Assembly (NCBI GenBank): GCA_002269645.1
Contig: NIVC01004953.1
Span: 1-30,313, forward strand
Source: Macrostomum lignano
Taxonomy: Eukaryota
Direction: 5' to 3'
Length of the DNA stretch: 30,313 nucleotides
Part shown: piece after piece, positions 6,723-28,572 of the stretch
How the letters are laid out: each line of letters begins with the position of its first letter
Position numbering within the stretch: the first letter of the stretch is position 1
Notes under the pieces: generated by a model
The model's database searches: none
What the model saw: only the letters and a program-made list of their open reading frames with translations
Told to the model about the DNA's origin: nothing
Made by a program: the position numbers and the translations under genes

Positions 6723-8012
6723 TTAGGTGTACGGTTGGATGACGAAAACTCCAATAAGAGCTGCAGTGGCGGCCACTCCCATAGCAACCATGAGTCGTTC
6801 GACAGCGTGCGTAGCAACCACCCAATCGGATCGAACAACTGGAGTGTCCTCTTCATCAGTACTGTTCTTTTTTTCGATGCTAGTCCCATTCTTGATCTCG
6901 ACCTTGTTGATTTTGGCAGCACCGCCAACGCAGAACACTCGAGCCAAGAAGCCAATCAAAACGGCACGCATGCAGGCCGACATCCGATTGCCCTCCGGAG
7001 CGAAGTGCAGACGCATAATTAGCGACGTTAGTAGCAGAGATATCGTCGACAAGGTCATAGCGGCCGTGATGAACGAAGCGATCGCTGGTGTTGTCTGCGA
7101 CTTGGGCACGATGCTGTCCAGCAGAAGAAGGAACACAGTGTAGCTGAGCATGATTGTGATGCCGAATCCTAGCTTCTCGCCAGACTCCAGGGGCACAAAG
7201 TATACCAGCACTTGTAGCAAAGTCAGCAGTAGCAGTGGTGTGATGATGTTCATAAAGTAGTAGGCGGAGACTCTCTCGATCTCCAGACGGATCACATAAG
7301 TTGGTAGAAGCACATCCGGTGCACCTTGAACGAGTTTGTACGGCTTCCGTTCGGACGACGTCGACGCATTCACCAACTTCCATTCGCTGTTCATCCGATA
7401 AAGTCCGTCTATTTGGAATGGCGTCAAATTGTTCTTGACAGGAATCAGCATTTGGTTGTCATGGCCCTGGTCGTTGAAGAAGAACTCGAGCTCGCAGACG
7501 TGCTTGTCTATGGGGAATTTGCTCACGTCGAACTCACACGAGAATTCGAACTCTCGACGCCATCCCGCGATGACTCTGGTAAGGTTGGACTGGATCGACC
7601 TTAGATACACTGGCATCTGCGGAGTGAGCATCTGGTTGTCTCCGATGCCATTATAGATGAGGATGACAGGAAACCAGACATTCGAATTGTCCCAGTTAAT
7701 CACGGTTAGGTTCCCAAACTTGGCCGGATCCCAGACCAGACGCTCCTCGGTCCAGCCGGCCATTACGAAAGCCCCAATCTTGACGCTTTGCTTGGCACTG
7801 TCTACTGATACCAGCTGGGTCAATGATGTGTCCATAGTGATGTAAGTAGGCTTGTAGGCGTTAATTGTGGGTCGCAGCAGCGGACTATAGTTGGTGATAT
7901 TGTTCTTCAAGTACTGCAGCAGCTCGTGTTGCAGATCTCTATCTTGAGCTGAGCCGCCACAAGTGGCAGCTAAAATCGCTGTGGCGACTAGTAGAATTTC
8001 GCGTACGGACAT
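6723..8012 (-). CDS. Cys-loop ligand-gated ion channel subunit, nAChR-like non-alpha (array copy 1, intact, 429 aa)
   Basis: Uninterrupted ORF with ATG at 8012 (MSVREILLVATAILAATCGG signal peptide). Cys-loop CEFDVSKFPIDKHVC (C-x13-C), four hydrophobic helices, M2 GEKLGFGITIMLSYTVFLLLL, no vicinal CC. Confidence 0.93.
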   Translation of the reverse strand: MSVREILLVATAILAATCGGSAQDRDLQHELLQYLKNNITNYSPLLRPTINAYKPTYITMDTSLTQLVSVDSAKQSVKIGAFVMAGWTEERLVWDPAKFGNLTVINWDNSNVWFPVILIYNGIGDNQMLTPQMPVYLRSIQSNLTRVIAGWRREFEFSCEFDVSKFPIDKHVCELEFFFNDQGHDNQMLIPVKNNLTPFQIDGLYRMNSEWKLVNASTSSERKPYKLVQGAPDVLLPTYVIRLEIERVSAYYFMNIITPLLLLTLLQVLVYFVPLESGEKLGFGITIMLSYTVFLLLLDSIVPKSQTTPAIASFITAAMTLSTISLLLTSLIMRLHFAPEGNRMSACMRAVLIGFLARVFCVGGAAKINKVEIKNGTSIEKKNSTDEEDTPVVRSDWVVATHAVERLMVAMGVAATAALIGVFVIQPYT

Positions 8013-8157
8013 TGTGTCGATGTGTCGATACGGTGTAAGAGGCAAATGTTGGTTACTGCTTTCTACTCTATATCATCATAGAAAGCAGAGTTGAAGAAAA
8101 GATCCTATAGGATAGCTGTTTAGTCAATAACGCGTCTGGTCTACCAGTGCTGAATCA

Positions 8158-8171
8158 ATCGCCATGGCAAC
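8158..8171. promoter_or_regulatory. X-box (RFX)-like motif about 150 bp upstream of copy 1 ATG
   Basis: ATCGCCATGGCAAC versus consensus GTHNYYATRRNAAC: one mismatch, perfect 3' half. Confidence 0.3.
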
Positions 8172-9147
8172 GAGTGGAACTGCTGTAATTGAATTAATTT
8201 CATTTGTGGAGGTACTCTTGTGTGCAATATAACTGGTGACGTTGCTTCCGTGTTTGACTAAATATCCCTTACCCCCTGAGCGCACGAATCCTCCGTGTGT
8301 TAGTAAACGAGAAAGCTGGTAAAATATACATTATCAACTACTGCATGGTAGTAGTAAAGAGAAACTCTTCAAAATGTTTGAAAGGGGCTGTCAACTTAAG
8401 CACTGTAAGTATATAGAAGTAAGTAAGCTCGAATTAGATTTCTAAAAAAACTGACAAACCGACTGGCTGAAATAAATAACGAAAAATCCTATCAATGCAA
8501 GTTCGTTTCTGGAACTCTCTTAGAGAATATCTCCGACTTGTCCGTCTATGTATATATTTTATCCGGAGCCTCACTTCGGCCTCCATTCCAGAGCGTTTAG
8601 TTGGTATCCCTTTTATTAGAATATTTCGCTTTACAATGCAGATGCGAAATCGAAAATATACTCTCAACCTTTTAACGGGAATTCCAACGGGTATGTAAAA
8701 AGACCAACATCTTCCAACATTTTCCAACATCAAAATGTACAAAAAATAGATAAACTACTACTTCATATTAGTGGCGTAGATAATATATTGAGTATATTAT
8801 ACGTAAGCAGATAGCAGCGTGTGTGTATTCCGTCCTATAATAAGCATAAAGGACGCCATAAATAAATAATTATTTTAGTTGACAGCGCCCAAGCCGGAAA
8901 AATTATTTCTTTTTAGTAGCGGTTCCTGCAGCCAGCAACGCATCTGAGTCTTGTCCTGAGTCCCGGGTTCGATTCCGTGCGGGTAAGTACCGTTAATAAA
9001 ATCAACATTAATAATTTATGTATGTCATGACAATTTTAAAGCAAGAATATCAAGATGAGTTGCAAAACCAGTTAATAATTTTGCAACACTAATAAAAACA
9101 ACCATAAAATTAGTTCTCACAGTTGTTAACAGCATTGTGTTGTTTAG

Positions 9148-10428
9148 TTAGTTAATTAACAGTGGCCTCAGCAGGAATGCCCCAATAATAGCGGCGGTAG
9201 CAACAACGCCCATTAGCGACATGAGCCTCTCGATTGCTCGACCTGCTACTTCCCAGTCCGATTCTGACGCTTCTTTTTCACTTGGCCTCCGGGCATTTTC
9301 GTTCTCTGTATAGCCTTCGACAGCAATTTGATTGGTCTTCTGTGATGCCCTAGTGGCGCCGCTGACGCAGAGCAGGCGGCCCAGGTATCGAACAAAGACC
9401 GTCCGAGCGCATTCCGGCATGCGGCTGCCCTCCGGCCTGAAGTGGAACAGCATGGTCAGCGAGGTCAGCAGCAGCGACACGGTAGACAGCACCATGGCGG
9501 CCGTGATGAACAGGGCGATGGCGGGCATCTTGTGCGACTTCGGCAGGATTCCGTCCAGAAGCAGCAAGAACACAGTGTAGCTGAGCATGATTGTGATGCC
9601 GAATCCCAGCTTCTCACCGGACTCCAGGGGCACAAAGTACACCAGCACTTGGAGCAGGGCGAGCAGCAACAGAGGAATTATAATGTTAATTACATAATAG
9701 GTTGATATCCTTTTAATTTTTAATACGACTCTGTAAATGGGTAGTTTAAGAGTGGATTCCATTTCTTCATAAATGTCATATGTTTGGGTCAATATGCTGA
9801 CTGTAGCAGTTTCGAGATTCCATTCTTTACTATGCTGGTAAATGCCTAGAAGCTTGTACTTGATACGCGGAACCGCTGGATGCGTCAAGTTTTGATAGTA
9901 TGCGTCAGTGGCGAATAATTTTATTTCGCAAGTGTGTCGATCAAATGGAAACTCGGCCATGTTGTACGCGCAAAAAAAATCGAACTCACGTCGCCAAGTG
10001 GCTATCACCTCAGACAAATTGGGAGTTTTCGACTTTAATCCAACAAACACCTTCGGCACCAATGTCTGATCATTGCCGTTGCCATTGTAGACTATGATGA
10101 TCGGGTGCCAAATCTGTTCAGCTTCCCATCGGGTGTACACGGTATTGCCGAAGTCTTCTGGGTTCCACACGAGTCGCTCTTCCTCCCAACTGGCTTCAAC
10201 GTATGCTGACACCTTCATGCTTTGCTTAGCTGTGTCCACGGAGACAATGTGGCTCAGCAAGAAGTTCAGCGATATGTTCAACATCTTGGTTTTGTCGATT
10301 CGTGGAAAATGCAACGGATTGTGATCGGTATTGTTTTTTAGATATTTTAGCAGCTTGGCGTCAAAGTCGACAGTCGTTGGCGTAACAGCTATTAGAAGAC
10401 ATAAAAGGATCGCTGTTCTAGCGAGCAT
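9148..10428 (-). CDS. Cys-loop ligand-gated ion channel subunit, nAChR-like non-alpha (array copy 2, intact, 426 aa)
   Basis: Uninterrupted ORF with likely ATG at 10428 (MLARTAILLCLLIAVTP signal peptide). Cys-loop CAYNMAEFPFDRHTC, same M2, four TM helices. Confidence 0.93.
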   Translation of the reverse strand: MLARTAILLCLLIAVTPTTVDFDAKLLKYLKNNTDHNPLHFPRIDKTKMLNISLNFLLSHIVSVDTAKQSMKVSAYVEASWEEERLVWNPEDFGNTVYTRWEAEQIWHPIIIVYNGNGNDQTLVPKVFVGLKSKTPNLSEVIATWRREFDFFCAYNMAEFPFDRHTCEIKLFATDAYYQNLTHPAVPRIKYKLLGIYQHSKEWNLETATVSILTQTYDIYEEMESTLKLPIYRVVLKIKRISTYYVINIIIPLLLLALLQVLVYFVPLESGEKLGFGITIMLSYTVFLLLLDGILPKSHKMPAIALFITAAMVLSTVSLLLTSLTMLFHFRPEGSRMPECARTVFVRYLGRLLCVSGATRASQKTNQIAVEGYTENENARRPSEKEASESDWEVAGRAIERLMSLMGVVATAAIIGAFLLRPLLIN

Positions 10429-11199
10429 TTTGCCACGAGACAGGGCTTTGCTTTGAATTGATCGGTTAATTGTAAGTTGCTCGGTTTTCCACTGCAGCCA
10501 TATATATACAGCACCAGAGATCTCGCAACTCATCACCCTGGCGTGCTAGTGTAAATTCTAGATTGATTCTTATTTGAATTTCATTTAGGTAATTCAATAG
10601 ATCAAATATCGTAAAGTTAGCTGCTTATATTGGTCTGATATTCCAATTAGCAGATCCCTGACCTCGTTTGACGTCGTTATTTGCATAGAAACTTTTCATC
10701 GCTGCATTTTCTGGTCTGGGTGCGGTCTGCAGTAGCGAACTATCTTTAGCACGGATACGCGCGGCGCACCTTTATATAGCATTCTCGGATATGTATTCCA
10801 TGTATGCTAGCATGTTGCAAAAGGATGCTAATGAAATTTACGTGAATATTATGTGTATAGCTACTATCTGTTTAATTAATAAATTGGATAAATCCTACAA
10901 GCATTCTTCGCTCCCTTTCAAAGCCATGTCGTTTTGAAGTTGAATTTTAGTCTATACAGCAGGTGACAAAATCAAACTAACCTGTCCGTTGGGTCTTATA
11001 AATCAAGAGCAGCCCGGCACGCAGGCCGTGCCTCAAAGCTAAATCTGCGGCGCGGGTGTCGGCCAGCAGGCAGTCTACAGAGCGCCGAGTTCGCGTCTGT
11101 CCTCGCCCGAGTAACAGTCCAATTTGGCAACAGACCATCTCGGCGACAACCATTTCGACGAAATTAACAAGAAGTTCAATTTTAAACGAATCGTAATGA

Positions 11200-11334
11200 T
11201 CTCTGTCTCTCTCTCTCTCTCTGTGTATTCTTTGCGAGTATAAAATTATGTGATAAACAAATTCCGACTACCTTAATCGAATAAGCTAGTTGGCGAGAAT
11301 TTTCATTTTAAACAAATCGCAATGATCTCTCTCT

Positions 11335-11366
<32 letters not shown>
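11200..11366. repeat. Two (CT)n microsatellites, each preceded by a similar 24-bp motif
   Basis: ttttaaacgaatcgtaatgatctc (about 11180) and ttttaaacaaatcgcaatgatctc (about 11306), each running into (CT)n. Confidence 0.75.
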
Positions 11367-11368
<2 letters not shown>

Positions 11369-13305
11369 CTCTCTGGGTCTGCTTCCCAAAGGGTTCCATC
11401 CCTGTGGGTCATCCCGCTGCAAATGCTGCACCCACTCACCGCATGTTCTCTCCAACTACTCCAAGCTACACAACTCGGGGAGTGTGAATTTGCCTGCCAG
11501 CTGCAGTTGCAACAGACGCAACAAGTCGCTTTGAAGAACCAGGCCGGAGCTGCAATAGAAGGCCGCGTTGATAACTCGCATATCGCAGATCCTTAAGGCT
11601 GCGTGCAGCAGGTCCTATAGTGTTTTAGCATAGTTTTTATGTTGCCTACTGATCTCTCAAAGACACAGACAACGCAAGATGTACAGCATTCCATACACTG
11701 ACTCCATTGAAACATCCGACGTCACAGACCATATGCTTTGCTCTACTTCTCGCAGACAATTAGGGGTGTGTCCAAAATCGAGTTCCGTTGTGACAGCGAT
11801 GCTGATCCATCTTATCCGTAGATTGTGAATAACGTGCAAGACGCGTTTGGCGCAAGGAATGACCAACTTCCTTTGAATATTTTGGCCCAGCCTTTCATTC
11901 ATAAAATCCACCGTTAAATTTACGAACCGACCACTCTGAAAGTTCTACCAAAATTAACTTTGCCAACCTTGTGACTTACTAAATAGAAATAACGATAGGA
12001 AACTTCATTTAAAATAATTATAGCAAGTAAAAAATTCTGCGGTTTATACTTTTTTAAATTAATACATAACTTGAAATATTTAGGACTATATCTGTATGCG
12101 AATATGAGAGCTAGTGCAGAGTTTTCACAAGAGTACAGAAATGCTTTGCTGTCTCAAGGGATTTGTAAGCACCTCACTGAAAAGTCCTACACAGTCTACA
12201 TAGTTTAAGCTCTTACGGCTGTAGTGGACTTCTTTCTTCTGTAACGAGTGCAGCTGCCTTTGTCAACTGAGGGTTTGTAATACCGTCCATAAATTCCAGA
12301 TATCGACTCTGTTGAGCTAGCTAATTGCCTACCGAGCTGGAGAGTCCAGAAGCGAGAGCACTTCAACCGCTACGCAACTGAGCTTTAACAAACAAATCGA
12401 TTGCAGCCGGAGCCATTGAATCGATTATAGGGATCCAACACTCTATCGAAAGCAGTCTCCATTGTTTGTCTAAAGCATATTTACCTGCCAATATGCAAAT
12501 CGATATATACAGCATTTATAACCTAGAGGATGCTGCCACTGTGTAGATAGGCTCAATGCTATATTTGCAATGAAAACTTGAATTGTGAAAAGAATTAATC
12601 GCTTCAAATATATCGTAAATCTTTTCAGCACTTTTTAGATAGACGGTATGTAAATACCGACTGGTCCCAATACATGTGCAGGGCCAAAAGAATATCATGA
12701 TTGAGGGGAACCTTTAATTCAATAGAAATATTTTCTACTGGTCTGGGCGTATCTTATACGCTTCAATCAGCTGAGTATTAAATTTTTTATTCAGGACAAG
12801 AACAACTATATTTTAGTGCATTTAAATAATAGATTATAGAAAGGACAGTGCTCAACTAGTCTTTAAGACGTTTTATAGTTGTCCCAAACTATAAACTATA
12901 AAATAACATTTCTATTTTACGAGACTTTTTACTCAAAGTACATGAGGGCACAGAGTGTGTAATCGAAGTGTGCTTCAGCGAGTGTGTCTCACGGTGACAA
13001 AGCCAGAGGCCATTTTACACAATGTGCGAGAGTGTGCCTGCGTACGTTTTCATTAGTGTCAGTGCAGATGGGTCAGTGGAATAGGCATATGACTGCTTTG
13101 CCTCCTCGATCGCTGGCTGCCTAATTTGCGGCACTTTCCAGTCTAATCCCTTCAAACTTTGACTTAATAAGGAAGAGCTTTTAAAGCTCGTTCGCGATAC
13201 CACGAAAGGAGACGAAATTGCGATAGCACGAATTGTGAAAAGATTTTGTACCTTTTTACCGTACGGCAGTTCCTTGATCTAATGCTTTATTTTATGTCCA
13301 TTATT

Positions 13306-14557
13306 CTATAGTAAAAACAAGCCGATGATGGCAGCAGTAGCAACCACTCCGAACAGCAAGATGAGCCTTTCGATTGCGCGTGCCGCTACCACCCAGTCTG
13401 AATCGAATTCCCTGGCTTCTCCGGCAACCTCCAAGGCACTTCTATCGGCTATGCCGAAACCCTCCAACGGTTTCTGGCCGACCCGTGGTGACGTTGCAGT
13501 ACTGACGCGGAGCAGTCGGCCCAGGCATCGAACAAAGACCGCCCGAGCGCATTCTGGCATGCGGCTGCCCTCCGGCCTGTAGTGGAACAGCATGACCAGC
13601 GATGTCAGCAGCAGCGACACGGTGGACAGCACCATGGCGGCCGTGATGAACAGGGCAATGGCGGGCAGCTTTTGCGACTTCGGCAGGATTCCGTCCAGAA
13701 GCAGCAAGAACACAGTGTAGCTGAGCATGATTGTGATGCCGAATCCCAGCTTCTCACCGGACTCCAGGGGTACAAAGTACACCAACACCTGGAGCAAAGT
13801 CAACAGCAGCAAAGGCGTGATGATGTTGATGAAATAGTACGTTGACACTCGCTTTAATTGCAATCTCAGTATGAACGCTGGGAATGCAGTCTCATGTGCA
13901 TCCAATACGTGGTAAAGTTTCTTTTCAAAGTGTGTGGTGGCATTGGTCAGAATCCATTCGTTGCTCGGATTGTAGATTCCCTGCACACGTAGAGGGGCCG
14001 TGCTCGGAACAGGAATGATTGAATCGAGATAGCCTTGATTATGGTAAATAAATAACAGCTCGCAAACATGCTGATCGTATGGAAAGTCAACCATGCTAAA
14101 CTCGCAATAAAACTCGAACTCCCGGCGCCAGTATGCTGTGACTATGGTCAGCGTTGGCCTTAACGATAACAATGCAACAGGGATCTGAGGCACGAGAACT
14201 TGGTCCTCGCCGTTGCCATTGTATATCATGATTGTCGGATACCAGATATGCGCTGGGTCCCAGCGAGTGAGCTGGGTGCACCAAAGTCGGCAGGATTCCA
14301 CACGAGTCGCTCCTCCTCCCAGCTGGCTTGAAAGTAGGCAGATATCCTCAAGTTTGCTTGGCGGTGTCCACTGAGACCAGATGGCTGACCATGATGTCCG
14401 TAGCTACTTTAATAGTTTTGGTCTTATTAATTCGCGGCAGTATGAAAGGACTGTAGTTTTTTATGGTTTGCTTAAGATGTTGCATCAGCAGGACATCGAA
14501 ATCGGTTGCTGCTGAATATCTGAAGAGAGAAGCGATTAGGATTACTTGAAAAAACAT
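13306..14557 (-). pseudogene. Cys-loop receptor array copy 3, two 1-bp frameshifts (pseudogene or sequencing error)
   Basis: ORFs 14348-14557 (signal peptide, ...VSVDTAKQT) and 13306-14301 join into a full subunit if one base is restored at about 14351 (ACT[T]TG) and one at about 14279 (GGTG[G]C). Cys-loop CEFSMVDFPYDQHVC. The C-terminus ends slightly early (GLFLL*). Confidence 0.85.
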
Positions 14558-17394
14558 CCTTGTTGCAGTCCTAGAAAGTGTTTTGACTGAGGTCTATTGG
14601 TTAAACGAGAATCTTTCCTATCAATGTATCAACGAAAAAGTATTTCTGTGCTTGCTTTGCTTAGGTATACTCACCAAGGTTGGTTCAAATATTTTATAGT
14701 CAAGATCCAATCGATACGATGACGAATAATTTTGAGTACCAAAAACACGCTGTACTGATAGTAGTATGTTCCGCAGCTGCGTGGCATGGCATAGCATAGC
14801 GCAAACATTGTTATTGCATTTGACTGGAGGCAGACCTAATGTTCATCTTCAGGGACTTCTTAAACTAGTTTAAGTAGTCCCTGGTTCATCTTTTGATATT
14901 TTGCCTTTCGTATACATGTTACAAGATCCTAATATGCTTAGAAAATTAGGATTCTACATGTATGTTAAATTGATGTTCTTAGTACATTTCCTGTGCCCTA
15001 AGAGTTATAAAAATGGCCTAGCTCGACTTATTAGTTTTATGAATATCTTTTTTACCATTCTCAGCTTCTGACTATGTAACAAAAATTTTAACAGGATGAG
15101 TTGAGCGGTGCTATTTTTATAATTTTTCGGAATGGAACATGTCAGTAGGATATGTAATTAACATTTATCCTAAATTCTCAGTTCACAGCCTCAAATCTTA
15201 GGTTTTAGACGAAATTTCCAGGATATCGTCATATCTACAGTACAAATATGTGGCTATTAGCTACATCAATTCTGTTCAGTCTTGTATTATCTTTCAGGGG
15301 TATCTGATGTTAAGTCTGTCTGGCTCCATCTGTATTTTTTAGTTTATATTTTAAAACCATATTCCACTTCATGTAATTCAACTGACAGACACATAGAAAG
15401 TAATCAAACGTTTGCTCTTAATTACCCGTAAGCGTGCCCCTTTAGGGGGTGACGTTTACGGTGGTCAATAGCTGGTCGGGCACCGGTCTCTCCCTTGCTC
15501 TGAACACTTTTTGCGTCATGTATTCTTTATTTCCGTCGCCCCGCTCCCTCTTCGTCCCTCTGCCATGCGCGCACCCACCTCCCCCGATATGGTTTTAAGG
15601 TCTTCTAGCGTTGTGTCGGCTCGTCTTGTCTGTTTGCGCAGAGTCAAGTTTTATCCTCTGTGGTGTCTTTTATCCTTATTCATAATGGCGATCGCTTTTT
15701 CCTTAATCGTTGCTGATAGCTTATTTTACTCTTTTCGTCGAAATATTATGTCCCAAGTCTATAGGGTTTTATGGGGCTTGCGTGCCTCGCTCCCCCACGT
15801 TGGTGTTTGCGTCAGGCTGCTTTCGTGCTCCGAACGTGGAATTAACATCGGCGATAAGGAAACGTCAGTGTTGATGAGGTGGTAAGACTGCATGTACGAG
15901 CACAAGAACTGCCACCGATTCTTAGAAAAGAGGCTATAGGGGACATAGCGACATGGTATACACATGTATTGATGACTGACCGATGTAACTGTACCCCTAC
16001 GTTAGAGTACATAGAAATGAAGACCTCTCATACCAGAAAAGCATGAGTTTAATATGTGGTTACTACCGGAAATTTTTATTGGGTGAATCCCTAGCTCTTT
16101 AGTAAGACTCTCTAGGACTCAATGCGATTCAGACAAAATCTGCCACGGAGCTAAATGCACTGCTGCAAAATCACATGGACCCAAGCCTACCTACCTGCAT
16201 TCAAACTTCGCAACTTGTAGCTCGATTTGTATTTTTTCGATTTTTTGTACCTATTCATGTTTGATCAGGAAAAATTTGATGTAATTATAACTCCCTGTCT
16301 AATATTTACATGTTACATATGTAATTTGCATCTGTAATTCCTGCCTCTCTGCCTCAAAAAAGCTTTTTAAGGGATAATTTTTAACAGTACGTGTTTAAAT
16401 GGAAGCTTGAATTCTGATTTGATTTTGAATTGTGGCCGATTTCTGTTGCCAAGTTCGGAAGTTCTGAGGACTTCGGTATTCGATGTAGGCAGAGCCGTCT
16501 GACTCGCCCCGCGACCCCCGGGATCGGTTCAGTACGCGGCCACATGCATATCGGGCCTGTGCACGAAAGTTGGCCCAGGGGGTTGTCCTGCGATTCTCGC
16601 CCACATGCGGGCCAAACCCCAAGGCGCAGAGGGTGTACATCCCCTGACGATTAGAAAGTCAAAAAGGCCCTGTGTGAGCGTGTGCACGAATGCGTGCCTG
16701 CTTACAGTATTAGCGCGCTTGTGTGTGCTCAGGACTCGGCGGAATGGCCAGAATTGCCTCAGAATTGCAGAAGAGCAGTATAGTGGATGAAGCCACAACC
16801 CTTTGTAATTATTATTAATAATAATCTTGTTATAGGGAGAGCACTTAATCTTTCCTCTCCTAGCTACCATCAATTAACTAGCTAGGAAGAACTTAATTAA
16901 TTATACACGGTTTCTGCTCTCGCTGAAATACAGACTGTTTACTCTGCAACTGAAGCAGATTTAGCGCCCAGCATGGCAACTGGACGAACGGGCCGCATTG
17001 CTCGCTATTCAAATATTTGCCCAAACGTTAATTGCATTAGCAAAACGCCTAGCCTATTTCCATTGCCTGCATTTCGCGCTTGACTAGTGCGTATCCAATG
17101 GCAACGGTGACTAGTTACTTTCGTTTATTCAAGCCCTTCCGCGATTGGCATTAGCCTATGCATGAAAAAATTGATCACGCATGTTTCACTACAGATCTAT
17201 CTAGTCACTGCCCAAGAAGGCCCGGGGATCAATGCCTGTTTCCTAAATTCAGAGCTAAAAAATTCCGAAAATTCAATTCAGAAGATTATTCAGAAAATAA
17301 AACAAAACCATTGCAAAGAGTATCAATGAATATGGTAGTCAATAGAATGCCAATGCCTTTCATAAGCATTCAAATCTCAGTTATTCAAGTTTCA

Positions 17395-18714
17395 TTAAGA
17401 GAACTGAAGATACGGCCCCATCAGAAAGACTACAATTATGATGGCGGTAGCAACCACTCCTAACAGCGACAAGAATCTCTCGATAGCGCGGGTGGCCACC
17501 ACCCAGTCTGAATCGACCGATTTCTCTTCCGCCGTAGGCGGTTTCCGCACGCAGTTGCCATCGCCCTCAGCTTCAGCCGGACTCTGCTGGCCCACCTGTG
17601 GCGCCGCTGACGCAGAGCAGGCGGCCCAGGCATCGAACAAAGGCCGCCCGAGCGCATTCCGGCATGCGGCTGCCCTCCGGCCTGTAGTGGAACAGCATGG
17701 TCAGCGATGTCAGCAGCAGCGACACGGTGGACAGCACCATGGCGGCCGTGATGAACAGGGCAATGGCGGGCATCTTCTGCGACTTCGGCAGATTCCGTCC
17801 AGAGCAGCAAGAACACAGTGTAGCTGAGCATGATTGTGATGCCGAATCCCAGCTTCTCACCGGACTCCAGGGGTACAAAGTACACCAACACCTGGAGCAA
17901 AGTCAACAGCAGCAAAGGCGTGATGATGTTGATGAAATAGTACGTTGACACTCGCTACAAGTGCAATCGCAGAACAAAGTTCGAAGTTCGGTCTCGTTAT
18001 GTCCTTCGATTATAAAATATTTTTTGGTTTCCAAATCTGCTGTTGCAATTTTCAATATCCACTCGTTGCTAGGCTTGTAAATTCCTGTCACCCGCATGGG
18101 CATTGCGCTGCGAACAGGCCGCATTGCATCAGGATTGGCCTGAGTTGCAAGGAAGAACAGCAGCTCGCAAGTGTGCTGGTCGTACGGAAAGTCGGACATG
18201 TTGAATTGGCAAAAAAATTCGAACTCCCGGCGCCAGGATGAAGCAACCGTCGTCACGCTTGAATTTTTAGAAGCAGTGTAAGTAGGAATCCGAGGAATCA
18301 GAATCTGTTCATCGCCGTTGTTGTATGTCATGATGATTTAGGTGTACCAGGAATTCTGTTCATCGCCGTTACCGTTGTATGTCATGATGATTGGGTACCA
18401 AATTTTCGCTGGGTCCCAGCTAGTAGAACTGACGCCACCAAAGTCGGCAGGATTCCACACGAGTCGCTCCTCCTCCCAGCTGGCTTAAACGTAGGCAGCG
18501 ATTTTGATGTTCTGCTTGGCAGTGTCCACTGAGACAAATGGGCTGACCATGATGTGAAACGACACGTTGACTTTCTTTGTCTTGTTTAATATTGGCAGAA
18601 TCATTGGCTGTAGTTTGCAATTTTGTTGTTTAGGTGCTGCATTAGCAGGACATCGAAATCAGTAGCTAGTGTCGAGGCTAAAAGCGAAACCAGCAGTATG
18701 AATGAGAATAGCAT
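17395..18714 (-). pseudogene. Cys-loop receptor array copy 4, multiply disrupted
   Basis: Start MLFSFILLVSLLASTLATDFDVLL at 18714. Lesions: 1-bp losses at about 18606, 17983, 17803 and 17791; in-frame stops at 18485-18487 (TAA) and 17955-17957 (TAG); an imperfect duplication of about 51 bp at 18304-18392 carrying a TAA. Cys-loop CQFNMSDFPYDQHTC. Confidence 0.88.
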
Positions 18715-18968
18715 TTTATGTCTCATTTTCCAGTGCATTGCTGATCGCATTGACAACTGGTACGTCTGATAAAATAGTTTTAATGCCGTTTCACCCCGAC
18801 CAACTACAGGTTGGGCTCAAAGATCGCCTGAAAATCCGTTTGCTACTGAAATTCGATTGGACAGATAGCTTTCATCAATATGAAAGCATAAAGCAGCGCC
18901 AGTGTTATCACATTTCTAGCGAGATATTTGATAAATATTGGCTTGAAAAAAATAGACTTGCTTTTTTT

Positions 18969-20884
18969 CAAGCCAATTGAGCTAGGAGCAAGAAATTTAA
19001 TCCTTAGTGGGAAGATCAAGCTATTGAAGACAATTGCTTTTCATTGTCTAGCAATTTGACGATCATTATTCACATTTTTAATGCAGAACAATCCATTACT
19101 ACAAGCAATGCATTTTCTTTAGGATCGTCAAATAGAAAAACAATGCAAAGAATCAGCGGTCGCAGCACGTGGCAACGATTTGTCTATGGCTCGCGCCTAC
19201 CGGCGCTCGCCAGACAATCGTTGTCACGCACTGGGACCGCTGATTATTTATCCATTGTCTATGGCCCGAAAGGGGGTCCATGGAACAACCAATTTGAGAA
19301 TTTGGGCGCGCTATTAATCCTTTCCACAGTTGCGCAAGCCTTAGACCATAGAAAATAACAGATTTCATTAGACAAACATAGACATGGCAGACGAAGAATT
19401 TAGCGAGCAGAGCAGTGACGAAAGTTTTGCTACAGCCCAAGATGGAGTAGATGAGCAGAATCCTGCAGGGCGAGAACCCTATCGCAAGATAAGCAACGAA
19501 AAGTACGACCTGATTATCGCTGCCATCGATAGAGGTGATAGTGCTGAGCACATTTCGCGATAGCTGGACGTAAAGAGAAAAACAGTTTATTCTATCAGGC
19601 GTCGCTATGAAACCACGGGACGCCGGGACCGCACACGACGGGGTGGAGATCGAGCATCGAAACTGGAAGAGAAACACATCCAACTACTTCTTTCATCACT
19701 GGATATCATCCTCTAATGACGTTGAAAGAGTTGCGACGCAAGTTGACTGACACCTATCCAGGCCGAAGTGAGTACTACAGCTGTAAGCCAGACCTTGGAC
19801 AAACAGCTGATTACATTGAAGTGCCTTGGTCGAGACGCCGATGTGCCAGTGGTCAGGAATAGTCCTGAATATCGGGCACGCCGACGAGAATTTTCTCACT
19901 GGTTCACTGGTGTTCCACTTGAACATCACCTCATCTATGTTGATGAGACCGGTTTCAACATTTGAACTCGCCGGTCCCAAGGACGCAGCAGACGTGGCCA
20001 GCGAGTCCGACGTGTTTTGCACACGCAACGTGGGGTTCAGGTCAATTTCCTGCAGGCAGTGGCACCAAATTTCGGCTTGGTACACCACAAGATTGTCGGT
20101 CACACACTGACTTCAAACGTGTTTCAAGCATTTGTCGAAAGAGCTGCTCCATGCTGTCAACAATCGAGATGATGTAGACAATGCCGAGAACTTCTTAGTA
20201 ACCATTGATGGCGCTCGCTTCCATAGCGGCTGAGGATCCCCAGCAGTTTGAGCTGAACTGGCAGGTTGTAGTACTGCCTCCATATTCTCCATTCTGAACC
20301 CGACCGAGTGTGCGCATTCCTGTTTGAAGGCGGCCATCAAGCGGCAGCTTGCACAGCCACAGGTGCAAATCGAATTGGACAATCCACCGCCAGAGACAAC
20401 ACTGCTCGAGTGGTGCGTACTCGTTCTTCATCGGATTGCGGAGGAGACAACGGCTGAGATCACAGAGGCCAAATGCGGTGGCTGGTTTCGGCAGATGCTT
20501 CGCTTCATCCCGCACTGCTTAAACGAGGAAGAAATTCTCTGAACATTGATCGGGTTTGGTTTCAATCTGTCCAACACTGTTTTGAGAGACACGATTGTTC
20601 TCGGCTTATACTGTATGCCATGGTTTTTCCTTTGCCTGTTTGATTGGTTTCTCTGAAATCAAAGTGTTAATGTCAATCGTTTCTTGATATGCCATCTATT
20701 TGCAGACGTTATTTCAGTAAAGTTATTCGTGAAGGATATACGAGCACTGTGAAAAGGATTAATTCTCAAATTGGTTGCTCCATAGTCCCCATTTTTTGGG
20801 CCATAGACAATGAAAAGCAAGTGTTCAATAGCTTGATTCTCCCAATAAGGATTAAACTGCTTGCTCCTAGGCTCAATTGGCTTG
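18969..20884 (+). mobile_element. Decayed IS630/Tc1/mariner DNA transposon with imperfect inverted repeats
   Basis: Inverted repeats: 18969-19050 plus 19253-19328 match the reverse complement of about 20750-20884 (caagccaattgagc..., cattgtctatggccc..., caaccaatttgagaat). A transposase remnant lies inside. Outer ends may extend a few tens of bp further. Confidence 0.85.
19384..20542 (+). pseudogene. DDE (IS630/Tc1-like) transposase pseudogene
   Basis: ATG at 19384. HTH-like segment (AEHISR*LDVKRKTVYSIRRRY...RGG), IYVDETGFNI (first D), IDGARFH (second D), LPPYSP-LNPTE (E). Several stops and frameshifts. Confidence 0.88.
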
Positions 20885-21900
20885 GAAACTTCTATACTAA
20901 ATTTGATTTATCATTTGGCCGTCAGGCTTTTTACAATATTGCAGCTCCCCTCAAAATGCATGTTTAATCCTCTAAAGAGAGCATAGACATAACGATTTTC
21001 CAGGATAATACGAGCGTATTGAATCCCGGAAATCCCGGAATGGAAGTAATGTAAATCGTTATATCTATGTTTTATATGGAGCTTTAGTTCTATGTCTATA
21101 GTTATAAGCTTGTAATTGGACTGAAGTGGTGCTGTTCCCCAGGGTTTTTTGGTTCTGTAGGGTAAAATACAGACTCAGTTTTTTTTTCTTCATCTAAATT
21201 AGATATTTCTTCAAGATTTAACACACATTAACACAACACACACCATTACCCTCGTATATCCTTTACATAAAGCAATAGGAGTGGAGCTAGTATAATACTT
21301 CCCATTTACAATATTTTGTAATCTAGCGAGCAAGGACTCGAATGTCTTTGTCCCTGGACAACTAAGGTAAAATAATTGACGAATTATGTGTACCCCACTG
21401 TCCCCCTAAGAAGTTAAAACAAAAACAAAATGCGCTGTCAGAGTTCTTAGATGGCAGCGTCACAAGGTCACAATTAGAAGCGTCACATAAATCTGATATA
21501 TTCGTAAAATATCGAATGTATTATTTCAAAGATTTAGCTAGGACAGAAAATTTTATGAAGATAGCGTTGAGAAAAAATTTATATTTAAGCGAAAGGATAA
21601 TGTCCAATAGAGTTTATTTAGATAGAGCATAATTGTGTGCAGCTGAGATTATAAACATTTCTTGGGCGTGAATACGAACAAAGATCACAGCGAGGGTACA
21701 AGTTGAAGACCAGTAAACTCCAATTATCGACTGATTTTCACCTCCTCAAATGTGTGAAAAAATTAAAACAATAATTTTCAAAAATAAGGCTCACTCTGAG
21801 TTATCAGTGGGTTAAATTTCGAGCAAGATTATTTAAACAAACAGTCTTAAATTCACTGCGCGTTGATAGCTCGTAGATTCCTCTTACGCTCGTAAACAGC

Positions 21901-23205
21901 TTAGTCTTGATTTTGAATCATGGGTTTCAAAACAAACACTCCGATGATTGCAGCTGTGGCGAAAACTCCCAGAGCCACCATCAGCCTCTCAATCGCGTAG
22001 GAAGCCACAATCCATTCCGACTTCGCCACGGGAGCTGAGTCGGCCATCTTGCGCACACTGGACTCACTTGCCGTTGCGTAAGCAGTCGGAGTCTCACTGT
22101 CCTGCGCACTGGACGAGCCGTTCACGCAGAACACGCGTCCAAGGAATCGGACAAAGAAGCCTCGGGCACATGCGGGCATCTTGGTGCCCTCCGGAGCGTA
22201 GTGAAATCGCATGATTAGCGAAGTTAACAGCAGTGACACCGTTGACAGGATCATGGCAGACGTGATGAACGATGCAATAGCTGGTGTTGACTGCGACTTC
22301 GGCAGGATGCCGTCCAGAAGCAGCAGAAACACGGTATAACTGAGCATGATTGTGATGCCGAATCCCAGTTTCTCGCCGGATTCGAGTGGTACAAAGTACA
22401 CCAGCACTTGAAGCAGAGTCAACAGCAACAGCGGAGTGATTACGCTTATCAAATAGTACGTTGAAACTCTTTTAAACTGCACCCTGATGATATAAGATGG
22501 GAGAATTTGCTTCGCAGCTACTCCGCGAATCAAATTGTAAGCCCTATATTCAGCTTTTGAGGATGCATTCACCAATGTCCACTCGCTGCTCTCTGTGTAT
22601 AGCGCCTTTATATCGAATGGGTGATTGGTCTTCGCTATTGGAATTACCATCGAATTTCCGTGCCCCTGGTCGCTGAAGAAGAACTCCAACTCGCAGTCGT
22701 GCTGATCCCAAGGGAATTTTGACACGTCAAATTGGCAGGCGAATTCGAACTCGCGACGCCACATTGCAGTAACTTGCGTACTGTTCACTGTTGTCGACAA
22801 AAGATCTACCGGCATCTGCGGCGCGAGAACCTGTCCGTCTCCAATGCCATTATACACCATGATAACAGGAAACCAGACCTCTGACGCGTCCCGGTTAATC
22901 ACTTTCACGCCGCCAAACTTTTTCGGATCCCAAACCAGTCGCTCCTCCTCCCACACAGCCTGAATGAATGCTGATATTTTTATGCTCTGCTTTGCCGTGT
23001 CTACAGACACAATCTGAGACAGAAGCGAGTCCATCACGATTTGGATCACCTTGTCCTGGTTAATTCTTGGTAACAGATTCGGGCTGAAATAGCTGATGTT
23101 GTTCTTTAAATACGTGTCAAGTTCACCCTCGAAGTCCTGCTGTCCCTGGACACCAGCCGCTGTCAGCAATAGTGTGATGACAGTCACAAATAGAGCCGGC
23201 GTCAT
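21901..23205 (-). CDS. Cys-loop ligand-gated ion channel subunit, nAChR-like non-alpha (array copy 5, intact, 434 aa)
   Basis: Uninterrupted ORF with signal peptide MTPALFVTVITLLLTAAGVQG, Cys-loop CQFDVSKFPWDQHDC, same M2, four TM helices. Confidence 0.94.
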   Translation of the reverse strand: MTPALFVTVITLLLTAAGVQGQQDFEGELDTYLKNNISYFSPNLLPRINQDKVIQIVMDSLLSQIVSVDTAKQSIKISAFIQAVWEEERLVWDPKKFGGVKVINRDASEVWFPVIMVYNGIGDGQVLAPQMPVDLLSTTVNSTQVTAMWRREFEFACQFDVSKFPWDQHDCELEFFFSDQGHGNSMVIPIAKTNHPFDIKALYTESSEWTLVNASSKAEYRAYNLIRGVAAKQILPSYIIRVQFKRVSTYYLISVITPLLLLTLLQVLVYFVPLESGEKLGFGITIMLSYTVFLLLLDGILPKSQSTPAIASFITSAMILSTVSLLLTSLIMRFHYAPEGTKMPACARGFFVRFLGRVFCVNGSSSAQDSETPTAYATASESSVRKMADSAPVAKSEWIVASYAIERLMVALGVFATAAIIGVFVLKPMIQNQD

Positions 23206-23838
23206 GTTTATCAGCTAGCTATGCTTTGGTATGCCTCGGTTCTCAAGAGAAATTCAATCAAACTTTGGTTATAAATATGGAGTTTGTCCAAACAATGGAT
23301 TTGTTTCATGATTGGCTTGCTGTGTGGCTTCTGACGCGAGCCACACGCATACAGTATGCATATTTGAGTGGTGCTCCTAACACAACGCTTACCTGAGTGG
23401 TGAAAACTGTGCAAGTTGATTGATTGATCAGATTAGGAGAAGCAAGCAAACGGGCGCACGCAGTATATAGTAGAGCTGCTTTAATTATTAATTCTGCTAA
23501 AAATAAAATGAAAGTCATGATTGAAAGCTTTCCATATAACGTCCAAACCAATTTTAGTGGCACTTTTACTCGTAGTGCCTTTAATTTCTATTGTTAATTG
23601 CTTTGCTATCGCAACAATGAGTGGGTACGAATGAAAGTTGGACGGACGAGCCAAGCCAAATAAGCGCATATTAACAACGAATACCGGATATTCGGTGCCT
23701 GGTTTTACTGTGTACTGGAGTGTTAGTGCCTGCGGTTAAATTTACTCATTGAATTTACTGATGCTATTTGTTTGATGAGTGGAATTAATGTGGATTGTGA
23801 AATGCTTGGGGTTTTTCGGGGTGGCCTGGAAGGTCTTT

Positions 23839-23858
23839 GAATCCCACCGCTGCCACCA
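23839..23858 (-). other. Primer-binding site complementary to the tRNA-Leu 3' end
   Basis: The + strand GAATCCCACCGCTGCCACCA equals, as I recall it, the 3' end of metazoan tRNA-Leu(AAG/TAG) including CCA. On the - strand, TGGTGGCAGCGGTGGGATTC begins 1 nt after the LTR-terminal CA. Confidence 0.8.
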
Positions 23859-23859
23859 G

Positions 23860-24830
23860 TGAAATAGATTGGGGTTTCTTCCCGATTTAGGCGCTTAAGA
23901 TTACCTTAAGACTCGAGCCTCTTCAGTGGGAAGTTCTCTCAACTCTCAGTAGCGTAGGTAGTGCTGCCACCAGTTCCTTCAGGTCTCGGCCTTCGATGAG
24001 GTGAGCTTCCCGTCGGAACGAAATAAACAAGTCAACGAACTCAGCACAGCGTGCAGATTTGCAGATTAATGAACAAGGCGTCCTGATCAGCAGATCCCCG
24101 CCGGGCTCAGGGGTGGCTGGAAGGCAGTGTTAGCCTCCCTTAGGCTTGGGCTTTAGTGGGGTCTCAGTCAGACCAGTACAAACGGATTCAGTACGCAAAG
24201 GGCACTTAGTTAGACACTGACGCACACGGGATCTTAGTGAATTCTCCGCAGATAAGAAGCCAAATCCTTGACGGAAACAAGGGGAGAGGGGTCCTATTTA
24301 TAGCCGGGAAACACCCACGCACAAGACCTCGTGACTTGTTCTATTTTTAGAACTGACGTCACTTGAGATCTCGAGGCAGGGTCTCAGTGCGCGCAAGACC
24401 TCGTGACTCGTTCTATTTTAGAACTGACGTCACTTGAGGTCTCCGGCCAGAGTACACGCGGCTGTGACTCAGTTGCTATTTTTAGCAACATGAGTCACTC
24501 CTCTCCTTAGAGAAGGGAGGGGTCCGAAAGCACGTGATTCTCCCGGTAAACAGGGCCAACGAGTGCAGTAAACATGTTTACTGCACTTTAGGACTCGAAG
24601 AACGCAGAGTCTGTCATGTGACTTGCTCACATGACAGAGGAAAACGGGACGGGAACGAAACAGAGACAGCCCACAGCAGAGAAGCTGAGGGCTGAGAACA
24701 GAGACGCAGAAGGGCAGAACAGGCCAAGGGCAGCAACAGACGGGCCAAGGGGGGTGGGAAGCTGACCAGCGGCAGACAGCAACCCAGGGCGAGGGCGAGG
24801 GAGACTGCTGACAAAGTGGGACGCCTAACA
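23860..24830 (-). mobile_element. 5' LTR (about 970 bp) of a truncated LTR retrotransposon
   Basis: The - strand begins TGTTAGG at 24830 and ends ...ATTTCA at 23860, directly before the PBS. TATA box CTATAAATAG at 24303-24294, motif-rich U3, and an abrupt switch to AT-rich host DNA after 24830. No gag/pol is seen downstream. Confidence 0.75.
24294..24540 (-). promoter_or_regulatory. LTR promoter/enhancer: TATA box, two CRE sites, two AP-1 sites, E-box
   Basis: TGACGTCA at 24354-24361 and 24425-24432, TGACTCA 24465-24471, TGAGTCA 24491-24497, CACGTG 24531-24536, TATA on the - strand at about 24302-24296. Confidence 0.55.
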
Positions 24831-25505
24831 TCAACTAGCGGATCACTACAATTAGCAATTATACAATAACTGCATAATAAATTAAATAGTTTGCAATTTT
24901 TTGTAATACTGCTTTTAATATTTTGTCGAAGTTTCTACAAAACAAGTTTCTATGAATCTTCACTCGCTCCCACTTCTAGTTTGAAAAGTAGACTTTTACG
25001 AGTGGTTCTGAAATAATAATAAACCTTCGCTCCATCAAAAATATATTTAACTAAATAAACTAATTATATTAATTATACATATATAATTAATAATAATACA
25101 CTTCTCTGAAACTCTCCTTTCTCACTTGCTCTGGCACCGAAATGTCTGGCAACGAAGTTTCTGGCTACATAACAACCAAACTTTTCTTAGTTCACTCACT
25201 AAAGTTTCTCGTTTCATAAAAGTTCGAAACTACTCTAAGTAGCTAAAAACGGATGGAAAAGTTTTGCTAACGACGCATTTTTTGGTGAAGTTATTGTTAA
25301 ATTTAAGATTATCCAGCGACAAGAAGTACATGTGGACAGAAAATGTATAGCTGGTAGTAGTAGTGTTTGATTAGACGAAAATATTTATTTATTTAAACAT
25401 TTAAAATATTGATGCGTGATGCGCATTTTCTCGCGCTTATTCCTCCAAAAATAAAGGAAGATGTTAGCCTCAGTGAAACTGTTAGCTGCCAATTGTGAAG
25501 CCAAG

Positions 25506-26809
25506 TCAGCATTTGTACGGCGAATCCCAGTAGGGCCTGATGATGAGGCCGCCCAGGAGGGCGGCTGTGGCTGCAACACCCAGCGCTACCATCAGCCACT
25601 CGACAGACTTTGTTGCCACCGTCAAATCCGATTGAATCCGGCCGGCGTTTCCATCCACTTTTCTAACGTTGGTCCGGCTATTGTCGCTATTTTCCGTCCA
25701 AACCGTCGCGTCGCTACCTTTCACGCACAGCAGACGGCCTAGAAATGGACGAGAACGACTTTAAGGCAGGTTGGCATTCCATCATCTCCAGGCGTGAAGT
25801 GAAGTCGCATGGTCAAAGAAGTCAGTAGGAGAGATCCTGTGGACAGAATCATCGCAGACGTGATGAAATATGCAACAAATGGCAGCTTTTGTGACCGATA
25901 GAATGCCGTCCAGGAGCAGTAGGAACACAGTGTAGCTGAGCATGATTGTGATGCCGAATCCCAGCTTCTCACCGGACTCCAGTGGCACAAAGTACACCAG
26001 CACTTGAAGAACAGACAACAGAATGAGCGGTGCAATGATGTTAACGAAGTAATAATTTGATACTCGACAGATCTGAAGCCTTAATTCGTACGTTGGAAGC
26101 AGCGCCTTTCTCGAACCTCGAATCAGTGCGTACTCCTTGAACTCTGCAGACGTGGAGAAGTTCAGAAGTGTCCATTCGCTGCTATTTTGGTATAGAACTA
26201 GCGGGTTATACGGAACCAGCTTGTTGACCTCAGGTTCTACCCCAGAATTGTGCCGTTCAGGATCGATGAAGCAGAATGATATAGAGCAGTCGTGCATGTC
26301 CACGGGAAACTGGCTTAGCTTACGTCAAACTTGCAAGTGAATTCGAACACGCGACGCCATGGAGCCGTGACTTGGGTTAAGTTGGGTGATTGCGACGTTA
26401 GGAAAACTGGCGTTTTTGATTGCGGCACCTGATCCTGTCCTACACCGTACATCAAAATCAAAGGGCTCCAGATTTCATCAACTTTCCAATTAATAACGGT
26501 AACATCACCGAATTTGCTCGAATTCCAAACCAGCCGCTCCTCTTCCCATTTTGCCTGAAGCAATGCGCTCACTCGTATCGTCTGCTTCACCGTGTCAACC
26601 GCAGTTATGTGGGTCAGCAGAGGGTCCATCCTGACAGCAATTTTAGCATTCGGCTCTATCCTGGGCGGGAGCAGGGGACTGTAGTTGGTTATGTTGTTCT
26701 TCAAGTACTGTATCACGTTAGCCTGGTGGTCCGCCCAGACAAAGCTGTTGCAGAAGAAACAGACAGCAAGAACAGTGAGAACAGCTGACAAATTTCGTAG
26801 TGGAGCCAT
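25506..26809 (-). pseudogene. Cys-loop receptor array copy 6, frameshifted
   Basis: ATG at 26809 (MAPLRNLSAVLTVLAVCFFC). A 5-bp tandem duplication TAAGC at 26313-26322 breaks the Cys-loop (CKFDVS[*]QFPVDMHDC). Further lesions are a 2-bp loss at about 25895 and a 1-bp loss at about 25742. Natural stop at 25506. Confidence 0.88.
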
Positions 26810-27945: not shown

Positions 27946-28572
27946 AAATACAATATTATATCAATTATGTATCTTTGAGACTTAAATCGCAAAATGAAAT
28001 TTTTATTTAAAAAACATGAACGGTGTATCTTTTACCGAAAACAGGCCTGCCATTTTTCCAGGAAATATGGTTTTTGGCGCAATTTAGCGGTTCTTGCTTT
28101 GTACAACAGCCGTGGGATTTTATTGCTCATTAGATGAAGAAGTGATGGCGGCTGTCAACCGATCAAACGTTTCGCCTCTGACTCTTCTTCTCATTCCACC
28201 CCTCCCTATTAGGCTTACTTTTCTCTAGGTAGCTACCCATGCTGCCAATGACTTAAATTGTCTTTGAGGCAATTTTTACACAGTTGCACAGTATTGAGAA
28301 CACAAACACCCTTCTGGCAGCCCAGAGTATTCCCGCGGTAGCTTCTATTCAAGAACTGATGCTTTAGTTAAATTGGAATCGACTCTTTCGCATTAGAAAA
28401 AATACGCTTTTGCAGCTGTCATTTTTCAACATCCTGCTGTTAAAATAGAAAAAACCGATGCGTTCCGTCCTTAAGACTTAGCCAGGTTCTTAACTATAAA
28501 ACCCGACGCTTATTAGAGAACCAACGCGCAACATCTTAACTGAGAATTACAAATTTCACACTGAAGACACCA

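Follow-up and report, generated by a model that had tools for sequence, protein, structure and literature searches.

A tandem array of intronless nicotinic receptor-like genes in Macrostomum with a predicted loss of the canonical acetylcholine site

Introduction

The question raised by the locus described here is whether a set of flatworm genes built like nicotinic acetylcholine receptor (nAChR) subunits can still bind acetylcholine (ACh) and, if they cannot, whether the differences among their binding pockets reflect selection for other ligands or the relaxation of an old constraint. The locus is a 20-kb block within a 30,313-nucleotide stretch of Macrostomum DNA (contig NIVC01004953.1; the whole stretch is referred to as the window), and consists of six head-to-tail copies of one minus-strand gene, numbered 1 to 6 and spaced 2.4-4.5 kb apart. 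A preliminary description of the locus had claimed that the aromatic box for ACh is dismantled, and differently so in each paralogue, and that variation focused on pocket residues suggests a diversifying ligand specificity. From the comparison of sequences we consider it probable, though only to a modest degree, that the locus is a birth-and-death array of orphan cationic subunits of the pentameric ligand-gated ion channel (pLGIC) superfamily, in which the ACh site would have been lost once and the variation of the pocket would mostly reflect relaxed constraint.

The acetylcholine site

The array is a lineage-specific tandem set of six intronless, divergent nicotinic-receptor-like cationic Cys-loop subunit genes. 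Copies 1, 2 and 5 are each formed by one unbroken open reading frame (ORF) of 426-434 codons, and since this single frame spans the protein from the signal peptide to the end of the fourth transmembrane helix (M4), their coding regions are intronless. The Pfam domains PF02931 (Neur_chan_LBD) and PF02932 (Neur_chan_memb) exceed their gathering scores in copies 1, 2, 3 and 5, and the closest relatives of solved structure are the human alpha7 and alpha3 nAChR subunits (E = 1e-40 with a single sequence and 1e-53 with a family profile), at an identity of about 24%. The AlphaFold2 model of copy 5 (predicted local distance difference test 86.8, predicted template modelling score 0.77) shows the expected order of strands and helices, and the 50 best matches of this model in a Foldseek search against the PDB are all nicotinic receptor chains, with template modelling scores of 0.72-0.87. 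In the Cys-loop the two cysteines are 13 residues apart and enclose the [FY]PxD motif (for instance CQFDVSKFPWDQHDC in copy 5); both are invariant across all copies, the loop of copy 6 being broken by a 5-nt duplication. The loop between M3 and M4 is short, with about 60 residues. Close homologues are very few, and outside Macrostomum the identity to any protein is only 20-27%.

One member of the cluster is PAA92206.1, a protein of the free-living flatworm M. lignano that is 95% identical to copy 5 and whose locus (L001; GCA_002269645.1, NIVC01000059.1) is syntenic with the window, with a coding identity of 95-97% and a synonymous divergence (dS) of 0.08-0.12. The orthologues of copies 4, 5 and 6 at that locus are all intact ORFs.

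The positions of the ACh box are well established for nAChRs and are given here in alpha7 numbering. Three alignments were compared (phmmer of copy 5 against alpha7, the family profile against alpha3 and alpha7, and a column extraction with hmmsearch) and agree at every position. The loop B tryptophan (TrpB, W149) is replaced by N, T, H, A, S and I in copies 1 to 6, respectively. This column lies exactly seven residues after the second Cys-loop cysteine with no gap between them, and thus the residue calls do not depend on the choice of alignment; counting from that cysteine gives the same residues. The columns of the vicinal cysteines C190 and C191 (the CC pair) hold hydrophobic pairs instead (L/V, I/Y, V/L, I/I, L/I and L/I). 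The second loop C tyrosine (TyrC2, Y195) is L, L, F, L, L and L, and the loop D tryptophan (TrpD, W55) is F, Y, Y, Y, F and L, so that the latter position is still aromatic in five of the six copies. Both the loop A tyrosine (TyrA, Y93) and the first loop C tyrosine (TyrC1, Y188) are Tyr in all six copies and also in two database proteins of the family, P0001 and P0002. Loop C itself is 3-5 residues longer than in alpha7, with 11-13 residues from TyrC1 to the conserved proline compared with 8 in alpha7 and in most relatives.

Thus four of the six residue features that mark an ACh-binding alpha subunit (the CC pair, TrpB, TyrC2 and TrpD) are absent and two (TyrA and TyrC1) are present. The residues given in the preliminary description stand, since no alignment restored a Trp in loop B or loop D or the second Tyr in loop C, and the peptides that it quoted for the elongated, copy-specific loop C without vicinal cysteines are found verbatim at all six sites. 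Its statement that the box is dismantled is correct for TrpB, the CC pair, TyrC2 and TrpD; nevertheless, the dismantling is incomplete, as TyrA and TyrC1 never vary and leave two of the five box positions untouched. Judged by these residues, the canonical cation-pi site for ACh is gone in every copy. That the box was dismantled separately in each paralogue is less well founded. The replacing residues do differ, but a seventh paralogue, P0002 from M. lignano, also has none of TrpB, the CC pair, TyrC2 and TrpD, and a single ancestral loss is more economical than six dismantlings because all seven known Macrostomum lineages are without TrpB. The intact M. lignano orthologues of copies 4 and 6 carry the pocket residues seen in the window, with the one exception of TyrC1 of copy 4, which is Phe there, and hence these residues predate the decay of both copies in the window.

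We propose that the canonical site was lost before the array expanded and that loops B, C and F diverged once they were released from its constraint. The intact copies would form cation channels unable to bind ACh through the classical cation-pi box, and probably act as orphan receptors; their agonist would then be a different one, perhaps an amine or a hydrophobic molecule bound through the retained TyrA and TyrC1.

The same residues could be read in another way, namely that the copies are accessory subunits with no agonist on their principal face, which co-assemble with canonical alpha subunits encoded elsewhere, like the vertebrate beta, gamma, delta and epsilon subunits, in a receptor still gated by ACh. 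Non-alpha subunits are classically recognised by their missing CC pair, and both the strict conservation of the pore and coupling elements and the persistence of an aromatic residue in loop D in most copies would agree with such a role. However, most of the relatives without the CC pair still keep TrpB and TrpD, whereas in the array the tryptophan of the complementary face is replaced too, by Leu in copy 6 and by Ile in the M. lignano orthologue of copy 5; furthermore, it is hard to see why interchangeable structural subunits would be needed in so many tandem copies. We therefore regard accessory subunits as improbable, even though the authors of the work on the annelid receptor Alpo4 name the need for partner subunits as one reason for its orphan status (PMC10338036).

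A motif of the family, WRREFEF, stands directly before the first Cys-loop cysteine and is invariant in every member (WRREFEFA at 22738-22761 in copy 5), whereas a search of about 160 relatives found it in none of them. The motif might contribute to the pocket floor or to a subunit interface. An interpretation as a family-specific insertion in loop E was rejected, given that the segment has the modal length of nAChR-like proteins and alpha7 is the short one.

The channel module

The M2 stretch ESGEKLGFGITIMLSYTVFLLLL is the same in all six copies and aligns to alpha7, with the GEK motif (Glu at -1'), Leu at 9' and no PAR motif. The longer M1-M2 segment LLQVLVYFVPLESGEKLGFGITIMLSYTVFLLL is likewise identical at the protein level in the six copies, with Glu at -1', Thr at 6', Leu at 9' and Val at 13' as in alpha7-type subunits. 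The relation of the GEK and PAR motifs and of the M2 residues to ion selectivity is established by mutagenesis. By these residues M2 carries the predicted cation-channel signature of the nAChR/5-HT3 branch, and an anion-selective channel like the ACh-gated chloride channels of flatworms was rejected on the same grounds, GEK being present and PAR absent. The FPxD of the Cys-loop, the arginine before M1 and the proline between M2 and M3 are also kept across the copies.

The identity of this module extends to the DNA. Third codon positions are 63-97% identical across M2 for every pair of copies, compared with a background of 25-45% elsewhere, and copies 2, 3 and 4 share a longer apparent conversion tract, with third positions 85-100% identical, that runs from M1 to the first part of the cytoplasmic loop (about 9380-9711, 13520-13851 and 17600-17954). 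A second tract, common to copies 3 and 4 and lying in the N-terminal part of the ectodomain, has 72-79% identity at third positions (about 14200-14380 and 18360-18540). In the ectodomains of the paralogues the proportion of synonymous sites that differ (pS) is 0.70-0.88, which means that synonymous sites are saturated. Third positions that are nearly identical in the pore while the synonymous sites of the ectodomain are saturated point to gene conversion, or to synonymous constraint, restricted to the channel module. Gene conversion would in this way keep the M1-M2 segment identical across the copies. The comparison of copies 5 and 6 with the M. lignano locus, where pS is 0.02-0.04 in the membrane and C-terminal half and about 0.16 in the ectodomain outside the loops, is consistent with an ongoing homogenisation or with synonymous constraint.

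Decay and turnover of copies

The preliminary description had missed that half of the copies are broken. In the window, copies 1, 2 and 5 are intact and copies 3, 4 and 6 are pseudogenes, with two, at least nine and three disabling lesions, respectively. The frame of copy 3 is broken in the N-terminal ectodomain by two 1-nt deletions, at about 14352 and about 14279, that are not compensated. Copy 4 carries two in-register stop codons (TAA at 18487-18485 and TAG at 17957-17955), a 51-nt insertion (18370-18320) that partly duplicates the adjacent coding sequence of loop A (IIMTYNGNGDEQ) and contains an in-frame TAA, and five uncompensated deletions (1 nt at 18603, 17985, 17803 and 17792, and 8 nt at 17600), together with two compensated +1/-1 pairs. 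In copy 6 a 5-nt tandem duplication of TAAGC interrupts the Cys-loop (26322-26318) and is accompanied by deletions of 2 nt at 25895 and 1 nt at 25746, and by a further in-frame deletion of 3 nt at 26448. Short introns or assembly errors were rejected as the cause of the broken frames in copies 4 and 6 in view of the indels of 1-8 nt, the duplications of 5 and 51 nt and the two nonsense codons that set them apart from the unbroken M. lignano frames; an assembly error is also unlikely because copy 5, in the same assembly, has no indel over 1305 nt against its M. lignano orthologue. P0003, another database version of copy 4, is likewise frameshifted, after loop F.

The M. lignano locus differs in content. 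Copy 3 is present there only as a 3' remnant of 113 codons, and copies 1 and 2 are absent from the corresponding position, where a GIPC1-like gene comes next; the array content thus differs between two genomes that are only about 4% apart in coding DNA. The family evolves by birth and death, and the array would gain and lose copies quickly. The known M. lignano versions of copy 5 (P0001 and P0164) differ from each other at few residues and the copy of the window is 94-95% identical to them, so that the window, whose copy 5 diverges more than these versions do, comes either from a near relative of the M. lignano that was sequenced or from a duplicated and diverged part of that genome. A search of the contig collection with the exact sequences of copies 1 and 5, P0001 and P0002 returned no match, and a locus was found only for P0164; a homologue search with copy 3 added no orthologue to those of the earlier searches, and a scan of metagenome contigs with the family profile gave no relatives.

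Selection was measured on the three orthologue pairs of copies 4, 5 and 6 between the window and M. lignano. Copies 5, 6 and 4 have ratios of non-synonymous to synonymous divergence (omega) of 0.29, 0.36 and 0.39, respectively, and copy 5 shows no amino-acid change in M1-M3, which indicates that the intact copy 5 is under purifying selection. These values bear on the possibility that no copy has a function and the array is decaying as a whole, with pocket residues that simply reflect neutral drift in dead retrocopies. Disabling lesions in three of the six copies and the frameshift in P0003 are what such a decay would leave behind, but copies 1, 2 and 5 keep ORFs of 1.3 kb despite the saturated synonymous sites between them, M. 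lignano has intact versions of copies 4 and 6, and neither the low omega of copy 5 nor its unchanged M1-M3 fits drift. We find a wholesale decay very hard to believe.

Variability and selection in the pocket

That variation is focused on the pocket, as the preliminary description had it, holds only in part. Over the six copies and P0002 the entropy of loops A-F is 1.51 compared with 1.08 for the ectodomain outside them (p = 2.5e-4), an excess that comes from loops C and F and more weakly from loop B, while loops A and D add nothing. The contrary expectation, a pocket no more variable than the remaining ectodomain, accordingly fails for the loops. For the five box positions it is borne out, since the set, brought down by the invariant TyrA and TyrC1, does not exceed the average variability (1.02 against 1.24). 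The TrpB column is among the most conserved in the relatives and among the most variable in the array. In 218 other nAChR-like domains the loops are also more variable than the core (3.09 versus 2.57), and the variability per site in the array follows this background with a rho of 0.55.

Tests among the paralogues had to be set aside: their dN/dS was dropped and a codeml site test on the six copies would be uninformative, because the synonymous sites of the ectodomain are saturated. In the three orthologue pairs the pooled loops A-F have a proportion of differing non-synonymous sites (pN) of 0.041 and a pN/pS of 0.49, compared with 0.030 and 0.22 for the remaining ectodomain (Fisher p = 0.24 for the difference in pN); a pN/pS of 0.14 is also given for the ectodomain outside the loops, alongside the purifying selection on copy 5. 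No signal of positive selection in loops A-F is seen in these pairs, in which counts are low: the loops evolve somewhat faster, yet below neutrality, and the values neither demonstrate positive selection nor speak decisively against it. The diversifying ligand specificity that had been suggested from the variation of the pocket finds no support in these values.

The alternative to be weighed here is an adaptive diversification, in which the copies would be chemoreceptor-like channels with a constant shared pore and with pockets driven apart by positive selection for different ligands. We consider it rather unlikely, although it would account for an ectodomain saturated at synonymous sites next to a pore homogenised by gene conversion, as well as for the gating motifs that have been kept, and it has a precedent in the octopus chemotactile receptors (CRs), whose pocket sites are reported to be under diversifying selection (PMC11526382). 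Several points tell in its favour or otherwise weigh against our proposal of pseudogenisation and relaxed constraint. Only 5 of the 192 ectodomain columns hold six different residues in the six copies (alpha7 positions 149, 154, 161, 187 and 189), and every one of them falls in loop B, C or F, the most variable loops, with the TrpB position among them; a marginal excess of variability in the loops also persists after the pLGIC background has been regressed out (p about 0.04). Such maximally variable columns and such a residual excess are what adaptive diversification would also produce. Moreover, the loop test rests on 23 non-synonymous substitutions, a number with which moderate positive selection at a few sites is compatible, and the single-base frameshifts of copy 3 could in principle be assembly errors.

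Against adaptive diversification, on the other hand, stand the loop pN/pS of 0.49, which does not significantly exceed that of the remaining ectodomain, the near-identity of loop B in copies 1 and 5 save for the single residue at the Trp position, the general tendency of pLGICs to vary in these loops, and the pseudogenisation of half of the array in the window, with copy 3 decayed in both genomes. Relaxed constraint after a single ancient loss of the site fits the data as well as adaptive diversification does.

Relation to known receptors

The array shares with human alpha7 and alpha3 the fold, the 13-residue Cys-loop with FPxD, TyrA and TyrC1, the GEK motif, Thr at 6', Leu at 9' and Val at 13' of M2, and the proline between M2 and M3; it differs from them in the absence of TrpB, the CC pair, TyrC2 and TrpD, in its longer loop C and in its short M3-M4 loop. 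Subunits without ACh-binding residues are not exceptional. Among the 150 nearest representative proteins from a library of 1.8 billion proteins, TrpB is kept in 59% of the domains by profile alignment and in 72% by an alignment-free count of the motif, with a non-aromatic residue at this position in 17%; the CC pair is found in only 79 of the 218 domains, and two or fewer of the box aromatics are kept in 89. By these counts nAChR-like subunits that have no ACh-binding residues are common in invertebrate expansions, and the array is a flatworm addition to an already described kind of divergent orphan nAChR-like expansion.

Molluscs and other lophotrochozoans have intronless nAChR genes in head-to-tail arrays of up to about a dozen; their sequences are highly diverse, and some of the intron-poor ones are probably pseudogenes (Jiao et al. 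2019, PMC6896357). In the same work no intronless nAChR genes were found in the ecdysozoans, vertebrates, sea squirt and leech that were checked, and none is reported for a flatworm; a text search of the article found no analysis of binding-site residues. The array in Macrostomum, which like the molluscs belongs to the spiralians, resembles those arrays in being intronless, tandem and diverse and in containing pseudogenes, but its family is only 20-27% identical to any protein from outside the genus.

Alpo4 from the annelid Alvinella pompejana (PDB 8BX5 and related entries) is an orphan without vicinal cysteines that does not respond to ACh; it keeps the full aromatic cage (F103, W159, Y199, Y205 and W65), and its pore is narrowed by a ring of methionines (PMC10338036). 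It is a lophotrochozoan nAChR-like protein that, like the array, has no CC pair, and is a detectable homologue of copy 5 (E = 1.2e-25). In contrast, the Macrostomum family lost TrpB, TyrC2 and TrpD and has an ordinary alpha7-like M2.

The cephalopod CRs derive from nAChRs, do not bind ACh and form an expanded repertoire of non-selective cation channels with variable pocket positions; they have hydrophobic agonists and sensory expression, and the diversifying selection on the pocket sites of the octopus CRs is reported to be strong (PMC11526382). The array, which is known from its sequence, differs from them in that no positive selection was detected in the three orthologue pairs. We found no evidence of orthology, as among solved structures neither the 60 best matches by sequence nor the 50 best by structure include a CR, the best of them being vertebrate alpha7, alpha4, alpha3 and muscle subunits. 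One might still imagine that flatworms recruited nicotinic-type channels independently as environmental or chemical sensors, convergent with the cephalopod receptors, with a pore kept by conversion, ligand domains tuned to different non-cholinergic ligands and a rapid turnover of copies; such a recruitment is in our opinion a long shot. The array provides no evidence of adaptive pocket evolution, and is a lineage-specific expansion with half of its copies dead in the window.

Should the intact copies prove to be working channels that are not cholinergic, they would provide a flatworm example next to the cephalopod CRs and the orphan subunits of annelids and molluscs in the growing set of nicotinic-type receptors that have adopted other ligands, and such channels would be placed in M. 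lignano, a genetically tractable model of regeneration. The saturated ectodomain beside a pore that appears to be gene-converted would furthermore be a neat case of concerted evolution specific to one module.

Features of the locus

The coordinates of the features are collected in Table 1.

Table 1. Features of the array, of its flanks and of the syntenic M. lignano locus (positions in the window unless L001 is indicated).
Feature	Position	Strand	Basis or remark
Copy 1, intact intronless nAChR-like pLGIC gene, 429 aa from ATG giving MSVREILL	6723..8012	-	Single ORF; Pfam; colinear with alpha7 and alpha3
Copy 1, M1-M2 stretch	~7110-7210	-	Equivalent to that of copy 5
Copy 1, loop C (PYKLVQGAPDVLLP)	7302..7343	-	No CC; four residues longer than alpha7
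Copy 1, loop B Trp-position codon, Asn	7473..7475	-	Alignments
Copy 2, intact intronless nAChR-like pLGIC gene, 426 aa from ATG giving MLARTAILL	9148..10428	-	ORF; Pfam
Copy 2, M1-M2 stretch	9547-9648	-	Equivalent to that of copy 5
Copy 2, loop C (TYDIYEEMESTLKLP)	9739..9783	-	Five residues longer than alpha7
Copy 2, loop B Trp-position codon, Thr	9907..9909	-	Alignments
Copy 3, pseudogene	13306..14557	-	Two 1-nt deletions; remainder is an open frame of 331 codons
Copy 3, M1-M2 stretch	13687-13788	-	Equivalent to that of copy 5
Copy 3, loop C (LYHVLDAHETAFP)	13879..13917	-	Three residues longer than alpha7
Copy 3, loop B Trp-position codon, His	14041..14043	-	Alignments
Copy 4, heavily decayed pseudogene	17395..18714	-	Lesions against intact M. 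lignano orthologue
Copy 4, M1-M2 stretch	17802-17880	-	Equivalent to that of copy 5
Copy 4, loop C (KYFIIEGHNETEL)	17984..18022	-	Frameshift directly after
Copy 4, loop B Trp-position codon, Ala	18146..18148	-	Ala in M. lignano orthologue too
Copy 5, intact gene, 434 aa	21901..23205	-	ORF; Pfam; M. lignano PAA92206.1; AlphaFold2 model
Copy 5, end of M1 to M2 pore helix (VLVYFVPLESGEKLGFGITIMLSYTVFLLLLDGI)	22306..22407	-	Protein identical, DNA near-identical in six copies
Copy 5, loop C (AYNLIRGVAAKQILP)	22498..22542	-	Five residues longer than alpha7
Copy 5, loop B Trp-position codon, Ser	22672..22674	-	Alignments
Copy 6, pseudogene	25506..26809	-	Lesions against intact M. lignano orthologue
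Copy 6, M1-M2 stretch	25902-26003	-	Equivalent to that of copy 5
Copy 6, loop C (EYALIRGSRKALLP)	26094..26135	-	Four residues longer than alpha7
Copy 6, loop B Trp-position codon, Ile	26265..26267	-	Ile in M. lignano orthologue too
CT-rich microsatellite/low-complexity block	269-4228		Strong GC and AT skew
30/110-nt minisatellite	4378-4891
15-nt minisatellite	27313-27944		About 42 copies
L001, orthologue of copy 6	7884-9188 (L001)
L001, orthologue of copy 5	10001-11305 (L001)
L001, orthologue of copy 4	12825-14105 (L001)
L001, remnant of copy 3	16333-16674 (L001)
L001, GIPC1-like gene	19062-21305 (L001)

No RNA families were recognised by Rfam over the window, and its intergenic ORFs have no Pfam matches. 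CT-rich microsatellites and minisatellites flank the array block on its two sides, and these repeats yield long spurious ORFs. Two intergenic blocks are conserved between the window and the M. lignano locus with 78-85% identity (15544-17323 against 14588-16362 of L001, and 28237-29162 against 6200-7198 of L001); they contain no ORF recognisable by Pfam, and may be regulatory or derived from repeats.

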